Notes: generated from the sequence alone by a model not told the origin. Counted from the first letter of the stretch, positions 12,477-24,400 are shown. The stretch is DNA of 64,000 nucleotides from Macrostomum lignano (GCA_002269645.1 NIVC01000811.1:1-64000); one strand, 5' to 3'. Numbers and translations: made by a program.

Positions 12477-15400
12477 AGCCCAACCAGACGATCAGAGTGC
12501 TGCAAAGCAAGGACTCATACGGCACCATAATGCTAACCGAATGCCTGGTTGATTTTCTTCGCATAACGGACGGAGGCTGCAGCGGAGACGGCAGCGCCAA
12601 CACTGTGGGGCTGCTGTCGTATGATGGCGGCAGTGCTGACATGAGGTATTCCGTACCGCTCATCGCCTACTCCGGCTGTGTGAGTAGCCCGCTTGTTTGA
12701 GCCAAATTTTAACTCGTCAGTATCTATAAGGTTAAGCAGAGCTGGCTGAGGTTAGTATGTACGCCTCGTCAGGCATTTAGATCAAGGCCTTGGATATTTG
12801 TGTACAGTACGGAGGTATATTTTAGCATTACCGCTAGCCATTTGACTGCAGACGGTTTAGACTATGATTTAGAAATTAGGGTTTATGGTTTAATAAAAGT
12901 TCTAAGTTTAGGGATTAGAGGTTAGTTTACGCTTTGGGATAGGGTTAGGGGATTAAGGTTTAGGTTTAGGGTTTGAGGATTAGGGTTTTGTTTTAGGAAT
13001 TAATGTGAGAGTTATAGATTCGACAGCCAATTGTTGTAGACCCTTTTATTCTATAAATGTATTTTATAATTGAGATTTTAAATTAAAAATTGTACTATTA
13101 TTTCCTGTCCATATTGCAGATGACGTTGGACTTTCTGGCGTCGCCTCGTATTAATAAAAACGGATTCAAAGTTGAACTTGTTGTTGAACACTGTCCCGCA
13201 AGCTGTATGAGCCGTGGAACCTGCAATAGTGGCGTCTGCCAGTGCTCACCTGGTAAGATTGAGCTGTTTGTGTTTTGTCAGAGTCGTGGTGAAATTCTAA
13301 GGCTTAATACAAGCTAGATATATGTTCAAAAACTTTACAAGTTCAAAACTTAGCAAGTTCGAAGCAAGGACCACTAGAAGTTACCGTTGTATCAGGACGC
13401 AACACTCGTAAATATTGCAAAATTATTTGAACCCGCATGTTTGCATTGCAGCTAAACTTTAAATGCTCATAACTCCGGACTGGTTGCACTTAGAGAGATA
13501 ATTTTTTTCGCAAAGTTGCTCGAAAATTTGTTCTCTTTAACATGAAGCTAAGTTTGGCGCTATATCTACATGTAGGAGCGGCGGGCGTACTGCACTTAAG
13601 TAACGGCAATACGCAATATTTCATTGCAGTCAAAATGAATAAAGTTTCAGTTATTTTAACCATTGCTTCCTAGTCTCGATAAAGTAGCAGACCATACAAC
13701 ATACTCTGTAGTTTGGAAGCTTTATAAAACGGATAATCTGTGCAGAGTTTAGTAGGCTGCAAAGGCGTCACTTCACTATCAAAAACCAGTATTATCAAAA
13801 TCAGGAAGGCGCAGTATTTTTGAAATCTTGGCACACCTGCCCAACAAGAACTCCAACATTCATAACCTTTCTTTTGCTGTTCAAATGAACAGGAGGAGTC
13901 AAATAAAACTTGTACAGTAGCACAACTTTATTTGTATTTAAGTTCAATTTCGATATAAAAACCTCTAATTTCATAAAGAATACATGCGAAATAAGAAAAC
14001 AAAGTCAAAAACACTAAGCCAATTTATTTTAAACTTGAACTTTCATACCAATCAAGTCATTCTGTCTAAAAAATCTCTTAAAATCACAAAACATAATGAA
14101 TCATAGTACTTCACCATGTTAGCTCAGCAGACATTGATGGATGAACATCTAGATTGGATGATTTGGCACACCTGAAATGAAACCAATTAATAAATATATA
14201 TAATAAATACCTGCTTTGCAATGAACAACAAAATATAAGCCTTGTTTCGAGTAAATGAATACATTTTCTCTATAATCTAATATGTATGAAACAAAGTTTA
14301 AACCATCAAGATAACAGCTAGTTTAACTAACATGAAACTGACAAACTAACAAATTAAAGTACATTGAATATGGATAAAAAGGTAATGATAATAAAAAACT
14401 GTAGTTAAACTAAACAAACATCTCAACTGTCAAACCGCAACATTTGTTAACAATATGGTTCATAAAATAATTGTCAATGACAAGACTAACAACCTACTTA
14501 TTACACTGATGAAAAACAAGATAAGGTTTACAATCTTGTATAAAGCTAGTTAGAACAATAGCTTTAGATAAGTCTATAAATGGTACACATCCTACTCTAC
14601 AGAATTGTCTTAGGCTTAATAAATAAGGAAAGAGAATAACAAATTTATAAACCAAACAATTGAAACATTTCATTTATCTCACTTTACATTTTAGAGGTTT
14701 CAACACAAAAATAAATAAAGAAATTGAAAAGCCAGTATAATAAACTTTAGCCTTGTTGTTTCTAGTGGGAAACCAACTTTCAGTATGCTAAAATATGTCT
14801 ACTAGAAAAGGATAAAAAAATAAAAAGCATAGGTTAGCTAAAGCAACATCTTATTGGTTGGATACATTTAAAACAAACAAACTATCATTTAACTTGTCTA
14901 TACTAACATCAAACATGAGTGCATGAATTAGTCCTAGTCTCCAGTAATAATATTAATAATAATAATAATAATAGGACTACTATGGACTGGTAGATCCGCC
15001 CTTTTTGGAGGTGGGGTGGGTGTCAACCCTCCTCGCCTCTCATTGGCTGGCGCGCGCGCCGCAGGCGCGTGGCGCTATCCAGGCGCCAATTAGGCGCCCA
15101 TGCCGCAGGCGCACCCTCCCGATATGTACCCCGATATGTATGCCCTCCCTCCCGATATGTATGCCCACCCTCCCGATATGTACCCCGATATGTATGCCCA
15201 CCCTCCCGATATGTATGCCCTCCAGAGCAGCAGGCGCCCATGCTGCAGGCGCCCATGCCGCAGGCACCCCGAGTGTACACTCTACCGAGCCGCAGGCACC
15301 CCGAGTGTACACTCTACCGAGCCGCAGGCACCCCGAGTGTACACTCTCGCGATATGTACACTCTACCACTCTCCCGATATGTAAGATATCTAGTCAGCGA

Positions 15401-21400: not shown

Positions 21401-24400
21401 GATGGCTGAGGACGCCAAGGCTGCCTACATGGCCAGCTTTTTCGAGCGCGAAGGCGTCCGGCTGGAAAAGGTGGAGGAGAATCCTGGCTTGCGCTTTGTG
21501 GCCAAGATTTTTCTAAACTCGTAAGTTTTTTCTACTTGCAGTGGGGGCCGTGTTTTTCTACTTACAAAAAAAAATTTATTTTTCCCTGCAGGCTCTGGGG
21601 CAAATTCTGCCAGCGCGACGACCTGACCTCCACAGAGATTGTGGACAGCTACGAGGCGTGGCTGCAGCGCCTGACCGACCCCTCGATCAAGGTCAAGTCG
21701 TGCGAGCCAATTGGGGAGAGCTTCATGATGCTCGAGTACAAGCCCCGATTTGGCGGTGCTGGCGAGCGGGCGTTCAAGTACGCTAATGTACCTATTGGCG
21801 TTTTCACCACCTCCCACGCCCGGCTGCGACTCTACGAGGCTCTGGAGGGCCTAGGAACCCGAGTCATTTACGCCGATACCGATTCGTAAGTAATTTTTTC
21901 ACTGTCTCTGTCTCTCTTTCTCCCCTTAACACTTTATTCTCCTCCTTCTCCCAGGGTTGTATACCGCTGCTCCCCGGGCGAGTACGAGCCTCCGGGCGGT
22001 TCGAGTTTGGGGCAGTGGACTGACGAGGTACCTGCTGGCTGCCGCATGGTACAGTTCACCACGGGAGGCCCCAAGCTCTACCGGTACTTAGTGGAGAAGC
22101 CCGACGGGTCGCTGTACTCGGTGCTCAAGTGCAAGGGCATCAGAGTCACCCCGAGATTTCCGAGCGCGAGGACGAGCTGCAGGAAATTCTGCGTCACGGC
22201 GGGACTGTACGCCTGCCCCAGGCCCAGTTCAGGCGCGATAAGGCTAGCTGTACAATCCGGACCCTCGAGATGGACAAGACTTTCCAGCGCGTAATGACTA
22301 AGAGGGTGTATGGGGCTGCTAGCCGCCCGTATGGCTTTCGGGAGTGAGTGAAAGATAAGGATCTGTCTTTTTACGCCTCCCTGCCTGGGATTCCCCTATG
22401 TGCCCACTTGGGATCCCTTGACTCGTGGGGATGAAAATGGTTTTACACCCGCATTGTACTTGGGCCTCGCAACACACGGGGGATCCCTCAACTTGGAGAG
22501 CTACCCTCTGGGGATCCACTAAAGCCCCGTGGGAGGTGCTGTAAAGTTTGACTGGAATTCTCTTTGTATGCGGTCTGTTACTCTACCTCCACTGTACATT
22601 GGGGCATCATTTGACACCCGGGACCGCACTGTACTTGGGATCCGCTAAAACCCCTATTTGTATGCGGTCTGTTATTCTGCCCGCCCTGTGCAATGTGAGG
22701 GGTCCTTGATAACCCCCCATTTGGGGAGGATTGGAATGCTCTCTGCCTGAACTGTACTTGGGATCCCCCGGCCCTGGGGAGGAATTTCTCTATGTTACTC
22801 CGCCCGCACTGTACATTGGGATCCCCGGCCCTGGCTCTGGGGGCGTGTCTCGAATATCCTGGGCTGGATATTTTACTTTGCACCTACATTATATGCTTAA
22901 TTTTGCATACATATGTTGTATTATACTTAACTTCCAGTGTGTGTATTTTATCCTATGCACTGAAATTTGTACCTGCGGGTTATTATGCAAAAATGTATCG
23001 TTTAAAATGCGCCTACATTATATGCTATGTAATTTTCTTGTATTATACTCAATTTGCACCTACATTGTGTGTATGTATGCACCTACATAATTGGAATCTA
23101 GAGTGTGTGCAATATACTGTGTGTATTTCCACCTATGTAGCGCCTACAGTACCTGCTTTGTCTATTTCTGCCCATGCACCTACATTGTGTGTTTTTGCTG
23201 CTCATATGGTCCAATATGTATTATGCGTCATTATTCACACCTACCAATATGTTTTATCTACTTTTTATGTAAATATACGCAATTTCATCTACTATAAGTA
23301 GTTTTCACTAGCCTAATATCGCTGACTAGATATCTTACATATCGGAGAGTGGTAGAGTGTACATATCGCGAGAGTGTACACTCGGGGTGCCTGCGGCTCG
23401 GTAGAGTGTACACTCGGGGTGCCTGCGGCTCGGTAGAGTGTACACTCGGGGTGCCTGCGGCATGGGCGCCTGCAGCATGGGCGCCTGCTGCTCTGGAGGG
23501 CATACATATCGGGAGGGAGGGCATACATATCGGGGTACATATCGGGAGGGTGGGCATACATATCGGGAGGGAGGGCATACATATCGGGGTACATATCGGG
23601 AGGGTGCGCCTGCGGCATGGGCGCCTAATTGGCGCCTGGATGGCGCCACGCGCCTGCGGCGCGCGCGCCAGCCAATGAGAGGCGAGGAGGGTTGACACCC
23701 ACCCCACCTCCAAAAAGGGCGGATCTACCAGTCCTTAGTAGTAATAGGCCTAATAATCATGGTAGGCATAGGCCTTGTAGCTGTTGTGAGTTTTAGTAGC
23801 CTATGATAGGCCTAATGTCATGATAGCCTAACTGTCATAGCTAGCTATAGCGTAAAGGCTAAGCTTATAAGTTATAAAATAATATAGACCTACTGGTTAA
23901 ATTACTTTCTGGTTGATAGTAAGTTAGTTAGAAGCCCTTCTGATCCTTTTCTCAAGCTTTGTTGAATTCGTAGTACTATTATTGTACTAGCAGTATCTGC
24001 TGTCTGCGTAAAACCTTAGGAAATATTAAAACGAGTTGCATATAATGATATAATTACTCAAAATATCTAGATTACAGCCTAAATGAACTATAAATACACA
24101 TATTATATGAAGCTTCTGGGGCTCAAATGTAGTGCATGCTTCTTTAAAACAGTCGACTCAAGTCGAGTAGATGCTTTTTTGAAGGCAAGTACCGATAAAT
24201 ACATGCAAACAAGCGGGCTTTCAAATAATTTTACAATATTTACGAGTGTTGCGTCCTGATACAACGGTAACTTCTAGTGGTCCTTGGTTCGAAGCTTCAC
24301 AAGCTTTAAACTCCATAAACTCGAAGCTTCACAAGCTCAAAAACTCCATAAACTCGAAGCTTCACAAGCTCAAAACTCCATAAACTCGAAGCTTCACAAG

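Follow-up and report, generated by a model that had tools for sequence, protein, structure and literature searches.

A compact Polinton-type element of the flatworm Macrostomum lignano with a protein-primed polymerase gene, one small gene and no detectable integrase

A 64-kb stretch of nuclear DNA from the flatworm Macrostomum lignano (hereafter the window, from the start of which all coordinates are counted) harbors an element of 8767 bp that combines the ends and the protein-primed DNA polymerase (pPolB) of Polintons/Mavericks with a single small gene, and in which no integrase or virion gene can be detected. The same polymerase is encoded by dozens of other gene models of this species. With a confidence only a little above even, the element can be regarded as one member of a multi-copy M. 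lignano family of Polinton/Maverick derivatives that retain the replication module alone.

Boundaries, gene content and copies of the element

The element extends from 14976 to 23742 and is bounded by two long terminal inverted repeats (TIRs), delimited by inverted-repeat search and self-BLAST, namely a left arm of 1354 nt (14976-16329, plus strand) and a right arm of 1292 nt (22451-23742, minus strand). In a global alignment the arms differ by 8 mismatches over 1291 aligned columns (99.4% identity) and by 5 indels, the largest of which (59 nt) lies within a block of 49-nt tandem repeats; tandem repeats are found in the left arm at 15112-15220, 15230-15347 and 16080-16188. Both ends of the element open with ACTACTA, i.e., with a 3-nt unit repeated at the extreme terminus, and each is directly adjoined by the hexamer AATAGG (14970-14975 on the left, 23743-23748 on the right, identical and read directly), an identity at all six positions for which the local base composition gives a chance probability of about 6e-4. 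The GC content of the element is about 0.5, as against the AT-rich and satellite-rich left flank. A first-pass annotation of the window had reported the same coordinates, size, TIR lengths and target duplication, all of which were recovered by inverted-repeat search, self-BLAST and direct reading. It had also deduced recent activity from the near-identity of the TIRs, and an identity of 99.4% is indeed compatible with a recent insertion. If the arms were identical at insertion, and if neutral rates between 1e-8 and 1e-9 per site and year can be assumed for M. lignano, the TIR divergence of 0.62% would correspond to an age of about 0.3-3 million years. Each TIR also contains an outward-reading open reading frame (ORF) of 169 codons starting with ATG (15418-15927, minus strand; 22792-23301, plus strand); the translations are hydrophobic, of low complexity and without Pfam or PHROG match, and these ORFs are probably not genes.

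The interior is completely filled by two divergent genes and the spacer between them, with no unassigned coding space left. About 45 bp separate the end of the small gene from the left TIR, and about 100 bp that of the pPolB gene from the right one. Between the start codons lies a spacer of about 245 bp (17047-17291), which contains a TATATATA stretch and presumably acts as a bidirectional promoter. The layout given by the first-pass annotation is thus right with regard to the divergent small gene and pPolB, but the kilobase that it had assigned to a promoter consists mostly of the first pPolB intron. Its view of the unit as compact, clean and derived from a Polinton agrees with the short distances between gene ends and TIRs.

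When the whole element was scanned with Pfam in six frames, stop codons being read as X, PF03175 alone was retrieved and no PF00665; neither double jelly-roll capsid, penton, packaging ATPase or maturation protease nor an RNA polymerase domain gave a Pfam match in the element. Profiles were also generated from six related Polinton-type loci (L002-L007, see below) for every gene family found in at least three of them, i.e., for the polymerase and six other families, which are an integrase, an A32-like ATPase, a family of about 460 aa and three more, none of them assigned as capsid. When the six non-polymerase profiles were compared with all ORFs of at least 40 aa in the window, nothing better than E 0.25 was observed, and the polymerase profile matches only the polymerase exons there. 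The integrase profile recovers all six relatives (E 1e-93 to 1e-190) and finds none in the window at E values up to 10. The first-pass annotation had claimed that remnants of integrase and virion genes are absent, and had named integrase or capsid remnants inside the unit as the finding that would speak against it; neither the Pfam scans nor the six relative-derived profiles disclosed any. Transposon ends and a target duplication are hence found together without an integrase in cis, as in non-autonomous transposons.

Other copies are known from UniRef gene models, predicted on a fragmented assembly. At least 41 M. lignano models named 'DNA-directed DNA polymerase' encode this polymerase and are its best protein matches, with identities of up to 97-99%. 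They fall into two subfamilies: the larger one, to which the present copy belongs, comprises 35 models that are mostly 88-98% identical, and the smaller one six models that are about 55-65% identical to the larger. Single-linkage clustering at 95% identity yields 18 clusters, and the spectrum of identities is graded. No integrase, capsid, ATPase or protease domain is found in the 41 models. In at least six of them the polymerase exons are immediately preceded by the small gene translated in antisense, which shows that copies share the adjacency of the two genes. In model P0047 the polymerase is located between the Reprolysin and the Disintegrin/ADAM_CR exons of an ADAM gene (about 98% identity to the present copy over the longest stretch), and in P0018 between C2H2 zinc-finger exons; over long aligned stretches both are about 97-98% identical to the present copy. 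These chimeric models are insertions at other loci. Since near-identical copies occur elsewhere, the element is not a unique ragged remnant, in line with what the first-pass annotation had maintained. For genome annotation this means that dozens of M. lignano polymerase models are copies of the element, some fused to ADAM or zinc-finger exons, and that the annotation of the host ADAM and zinc-finger genes is therefore contaminated.

The polymerase and the small protein

The pPolB gene (17292-22347, plus strand) consists of seven exons separated by six GT-AG introns; it begins with the ATG at 17292, ends with the stop codon at 22345-22347 and encodes a product of about 1270 aa that matches Pfam PF03175 twice (E 4e-17 and 5e-13). 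Splicing rebuilds polymerase motifs B (KIFLNS/LWGKF, the slash marking the junction) and C (YADTDS/VVY), and also joins motif A. The short exons 1 and 2 match the M. lignano model P0028. An ATG just upstream of exon 2 had been considered as the start and was replaced, because an upstream exon with a consensus donor matches the same model. Intron 1 is about 740 nt long (about 17353-18092) and contains G-rich repeats, with a direct repeat of 134-147 nt (17541-17674 and 17782-17928). Intron 3 (18792-18972) has a GC content of 0.26 and is mostly a 48/90-nt tandem repeat. At 20900-20985, the first four codons of intron 4, if read through, give VSLY, the same residues that begin the next exon, a recurrence that could be due to chance or could be a trace of intron birth via local duplication.

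All expected motifs are present in the polymerase of this copy, i.e., Exo I, II and III, motifs A, B and C, and KxY. Relative to models P0047 and P0048, it shows one frameshift, zero in-frame stops and zero foreign insertions; the frameshift may be real decay or an indel of the long-read assembly. The GC content at third codon positions (GC3) of the element genes equals that of the host genes. Whole-protein comparisons were made with separate ORF pieces and with the database models as they stand.

From its N-terminus, the enzyme starts with a terminal-protein-like region together with a vOTU cysteine protease region (18208-19210, plus strand, with one intron inside), in which a Cys motif and the His motif EQHFNVV are present. 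The N-terminal part of about 280 aa is kept in more than 35 relatives. An AlphaFold2 (AF2) model of this region, built from the database model P0005 and 17 relatives, reached a predicted local distance difference test (pLDDT) score of 88. In a fold search with this model, the best viral matches were the N-termini of adintovirus and bidnavirus-type pPolBs (E 3e-8 to 4e-5), and next to them ranked viral OTU proteases, from RNA viruses and giant viruses; among PDB structures DNA polymerase kappa was matched weakly, and a sequence-only PDB search with the N-terminal profile gave nothing useful. The flatworm N-terminus agrees with the terminal-protein plus vOTU layout published for Polinton pPolBs (PMC11161782).

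A Cys-rich, zinc-ribbon-like region follows (19220-19560, plus strand), recognized in the translation and covered by the alignments to many relatives, which may bind metal. The 3'-5' exonuclease domain with Exo I, II and III and a second Cys cluster is located at 19575-20446 (plus strand; PF03175 profile positions 10-195), and the polymerase domain with motifs A, B, C and KxY at 20870-22347 (plus strand; three introns; profile positions 238-366). Between these two domains is inserted a nuclease domain of the very short patch repair (VSR) type (20540-20800, plus strand). This insert of about 120 aa is kept in almost all relatives, and in the flatworm element its invariant Asp, His and Cys residues are conserved. 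When 26 homologous inserts were combined into a profile, it matched the Escherichia coli Vsr structures 1VSR, 1ODG and 1CW0 in PDB (E 9e-5); the insert matches a PHROG named 'endonuclease' (E 9e-4), and JGI lists the relative P0052 as Vsr. Some Polinton pPolBs have been reported to contain such an insert (PMC10748475). With its terminal-protein-like, vOTU, exonuclease, VSR and polymerase domains, the flatworm pPolB is a complete Polinton-type enzyme, which thus comes with a built-in priming domain and with the protease presumed to free that domain.

The small gene (16372-17046, minus strand) appears intact. Its two exons, the first of 160 codons and the second short and acidic, are separated by an AT-rich intron whose GT donor is weak, and encode a product of about 179 aa; the same structure is found in the M. 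lignano models P0042-P0045. Codon usage similar to that of pPolB is observed in the minus frame only (+0.19 bits per codon; GC3 0.65 vs 0.69). A plus-strand ORF antisense to the small gene (16303-17031, 242 codons) was rejected as coding, as its codon-usage score is negative. It serves as a polymerase exon in the UniRef models P0005, P0007, P0022, P0025, P0026 and P0028, and this exon is consequently an annotation artefact.

The core of the predicted small protein is basic (pI 9.8). It is accompanied by a KRVK cluster flanked by prolines, which has the pattern of a monopartite nuclear localisation signal, and by an acidic C-terminal tail (pI about 4) of which the motif CFES..EE recurs in the divergent copy P0046. 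Its homologs are limited to five M. lignano clusters, whose automatic names are mutually inconsistent; none was found in the related Polinton loci, IMG/VR, NCBIfam or PHROGs. The first-pass annotation had called it a PC4-like single-stranded DNA-binding protein (SSB), an identity that was not confirmed. Compared with the Pfam PC4 family (PF02229), residues 21-56 score 14.1-15.8 bits, below the cut-off of 25, and the PC4 structure 4usg in PDB is matched at E 0.35 over residues 23-66, with bacterial SSBs next at E of about 0.8. The resemblance to PC4 at the sequence level seems real but weak, and the PC4/SSB label is not established. An AF2 model of the small protein from six sequences was unusable (pLDDT 37). 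An internal duplication into two PC4-like halves was considered and dismissed as not significant, 8.6% of shuffles scoring as well. On a scaffold of the tardigrade Paramacrobiotus (L007), a protein with a PC4 domain (21487-22404, minus strand; 29.1 bits vs the Pfam cut-off of 25) is encoded just past the last ORF of a Polinton with a related polymerase; it shows no hhalign similarity to the flatworm protein and has no counterpart in the other five loci, and its gene is probably a host gene. In many replicative single-stranded DNA-binding proteins, an acidic tail is attached to a basic body that binds DNA. By analogy with other protein-primed replicons, a function of the small protein in single-stranded DNA binding or as a replication accessory protein is plausible.

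Relatives, competing explanations and known systems

In a HMMER search of 1.84 billion representative sequences, 6127 relatives of the polymerase were retrieved, 658 of them below 1e-30. The closest ones outside M. lignano are 33-36% identical. Six relatives could be placed on DNA, four of them on contigs from environmental or SRA data (L002-L005, 13-18 kb), one on a Nematostella chromosome (L006) and one on the tardigrade scaffold mentioned above (L007). All six loci are of Polinton type, 13-23 kb in size, with an rve (chromodomain) integrase 0.2-4 kb downstream of pPolB and further conserved genes, among them an A32-like ATPase; the integrase family of these loci includes one labelled adintovirus integrase. 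No TIRs were found in these contigs and loci. Relatives with a VSR insert are also present in cnidarian, insect and tardigrade genomes.

According to the preferred reading, i.e., a family of Polinton derivatives that keep the replication module alone, the polymerase would start to copy the element at the TIR ends by protein priming, and the repeated terminal triplet there may allow jump-back, as known from other protein-primed systems. A nuclear DNA-binding accessory function, possibly as a single-stranded DNA-binding protein, would fall to the small basic protein with its acidic tail. Insertion would proceed through a 6-bp staggered cut made by an rve-type integrase provided in trans by an autonomous Polinton, so that neither integration nor any formation of particles would be autonomous in this family. 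Several points weigh against this reading. Competence for replication is inferred throughout, the pPolB of this copy has a frameshift, and no significant homology backs the proposed role of the small protein. Several gene models share upstream exons that are absent from the window and could mean longer variants, and the number of models may overcount the copies owing to haplotigs and recent genome duplication. Lastly, no helper integrase was identified, none from M. lignano being found among the best 120 of 3011 matches to the integrase profile. A bolder version would have the element replicate itself in an animal nuclear genome without capsid or integrase genes, as a Polinton cut down to its origins, its polymerase and one DNA-binding accessory protein, which needs a helper for integration only and perhaps for packaging; we hold this to be rather unlikely and put it forward tentatively.

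The element could also be an ordinary internal-deletion derivative of resident full-length Polintons with the same TIRs, in which the retained genes are not needed for spread. This explanation is doubtful, though it deserves serious attention, as deletion derivatives are the rule in families of DNA transposons, and both the frameshift and the extra upstream exons of some gene models would fit it. On the other hand, the junctions are clean, with gene ends very close to the TIRs; no orphan fragment of the six Polinton gene families is left; other Polinton domains are found in none of the 41 polymerase models; and all catalytic motifs are kept in both subfamilies, which are about 40% apart in protein sequence. 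The maintenance of these motifs in two divergent subfamilies, together with the introns and the host-like codon usage, points to a working polymerase gene that has long been retained. A decaying relic is improbable. It would explain the multi-copy signal by segmental or whole-genome duplication and haplotigs rather than by transposition, considering that the M. lignano genome is recently duplicated and repeat-rich, that the UniRef models stem from a fragmented assembly and that this copy is frameshifted. Yet copies lie in unrelated host contexts (within ADAM and zinc-finger genes, and here upstream of an attractin-like gene), the TIRs are nearly identical, and there are 18 clusters at 95% identity, with a graded identity spectrum.

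Slimmer still is the case for an autonomous element that needs no rve integrase for its integration and uses its embedded VSR nuclease, or host repair, instead. The nuclease domain is encoded with its conserved invariant positions, and no integrase is found in the element or in the surrounding 64 kb. However, relatives with the same insert also encode an adjacent rve integrase, so the insert does not replace the integrase there; a precise 6-bp duplication is a known signature of the Polinton integrase; and Vsr-type enzymes nick a single strand. Finally, long-read assemblies can hold chimeric joins, and the unit might stem from misassembly, or from contaminating DNA of a virus or linear plasmid that was joined to sequence of the flatworm. 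This has no specific support and is very improbable indeed, given the perfect target duplication that flanks the unit, the spliceosomal introns and host-like GC3, and the dozens of independent M. lignano models that encode the same protein, some of them fused to host exons. The overall interpretation of the first-pass annotation is partly supported: derivation from a Polinton, compactness and the lack of integrase or virion gene remnants withstood this comparison, and the existence of a multi-copy family agrees with its view that the unit is no ragged remnant; the PC4/SSB label is not supported.

The replication-module family thus proposed shares features with several known systems. With Polintons/Mavericks (adintovirus-like, Polintoviricetes) it has in common the pPolB architecture, long TIRs, a 6-bp duplication and nuclear integration in an animal, and its closest pPolB relatives sit in Polinton-type elements. 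Unlike Polintons, the flatworm element has no rve integrase, capsid, ATPase or protease genes, measures 8.8 kb as compared with about 13-20 kb, and harbors an additional lineage-specific small gene; its polymerase gene has six introns, whereas that of the environmental relatives is intronless. Non-autonomous transposons and satellites, such as miniature inverted-repeat transposable elements (MITEs), transpovirons and virophage-like elements, likewise display integrase-type ends and a duplication without an integrase in cis, and the flatworm element would depend on a helper as they do. Typical non-autonomous transposons encode no replication enzyme, in contrast to the flatworm element, which keeps the largest enzyme of its parent, apparently under constraint. 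Bidnaviridae also carry a Polinton-derived pPolB, without Polinton virion genes, on a segment of roughly 6 kb that is bounded by TIRs, and the N-terminal fold of the flatworm family matches bidnavirus-type polymerases. Bidnaviruses are nevertheless encapsidated single-stranded DNA viruses with parvovirus-type capsid genes on their segments, and nothing of this kind is found in the flatworm element.

The linear plasmids of fungal and plant mitochondria and of the yeast cytoplasm (kalilo-type and killer-plasmid-type invertrons) are about 7-13 kb long, and some of them encode a small DNA-binding accessory protein. The flatworm element resembles them in being compact and capsid-less, with long TIRs and a pPolB of the kind in which the terminal protein is provided by the N-terminus (PMC11161782). 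Unlike these plasmids, which are extrachromosomal, organellar or cytoplasmic, intron-free and usually equipped with their own RNA polymerase, it is known as a chromosomal insertion flanked by a target duplication, contains spliceosomal introns and encodes no RNA polymerase. The VSR domain within the polymerase is shared with the VSR-inserted Polinton pPolBs ('pPolB2') of marine nematode and mollusc elements (Jeong et al., 2023; PMC10748475). The latter are integrase-linked full Polintons.

Full-text literature searches retrieved no relevant paper tying Macrostomum to Polintons or Mavericks, and no paper tying PC4 to Polintons or adintoviruses. As far as titles and abstracts on non-autonomous or integrase-lacking Polintons tell, no integrase-less and capsid-less form that retains pPolB has been described. 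Polintons are defined by a protein-primed polymerase and an integrase together. The largest survey of pPolBs considered integrase-linked polymerases only and did not report Platyhelminthes for pPolB2 (PMC10748475); since such surveys retain no others, elements of the present kind are filtered out by design. An apparently constrained, intron-bearing polymerase without integrase and virion genes would show that a replication module can persist alone in an animal genome. If so, it would offer a concrete example of the reduction that has been proposed behind linear plasmids and bidnavirus segments, and would raise the question of helper-dependent relations among Polintons. Should the bolder version given above hold, the element would represent a living intermediate on the route proposed to lead from Polintons to linear plasmids and bidnavirus-type segments, and the first satellite-like Polinton dependent in an animal.

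Host setting and minor features of the window

The element is flanked on the left by two satellite families with short TTAGGG tracts. On the right, from 24534, exons of an attractin/MEGF8-like gene (Kelch propeller, laminin-type EGF) are found, beyond which lie exons of WD40, RING-variant and GH20 hexosaminidase genes. With host genes and satellites on its flanks, the element is hence inserted in a nuclear chromosome.

The satellites at 1-12310 are built from a 23-nt unit (1-1458 and 3678-7231) and a 22-nt unit (2593-2899 and 8367-12310), and form a higher-order duplication of about 5.8 kb with interstitial TTAGGG at each junction (2314-2369 and 8087-8142). Rfam and tRNA scans of 13000-25000 gave no match. 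The element and about 2.2 kb of AT-rich flank are enclosed by a 74-nt inverted repeat (97%; 13358-13431 and 24220-24293), which is adjoined by 16/32-nt tandem repeats (13324-13360 and 24289-24483); the element may have landed within a small foldback or MITE-like repeat. Further to the right, long microsatellites of the (TATC)n and (TCTG)n types (25658-26105 and 26633-26975) and a GAT/GAC-rich tract of about 1.5 kb (47437-49026), which translates as poly-Asp and lies upstream of the WD40 exons, represent ordinary repeat-rich host sequence.

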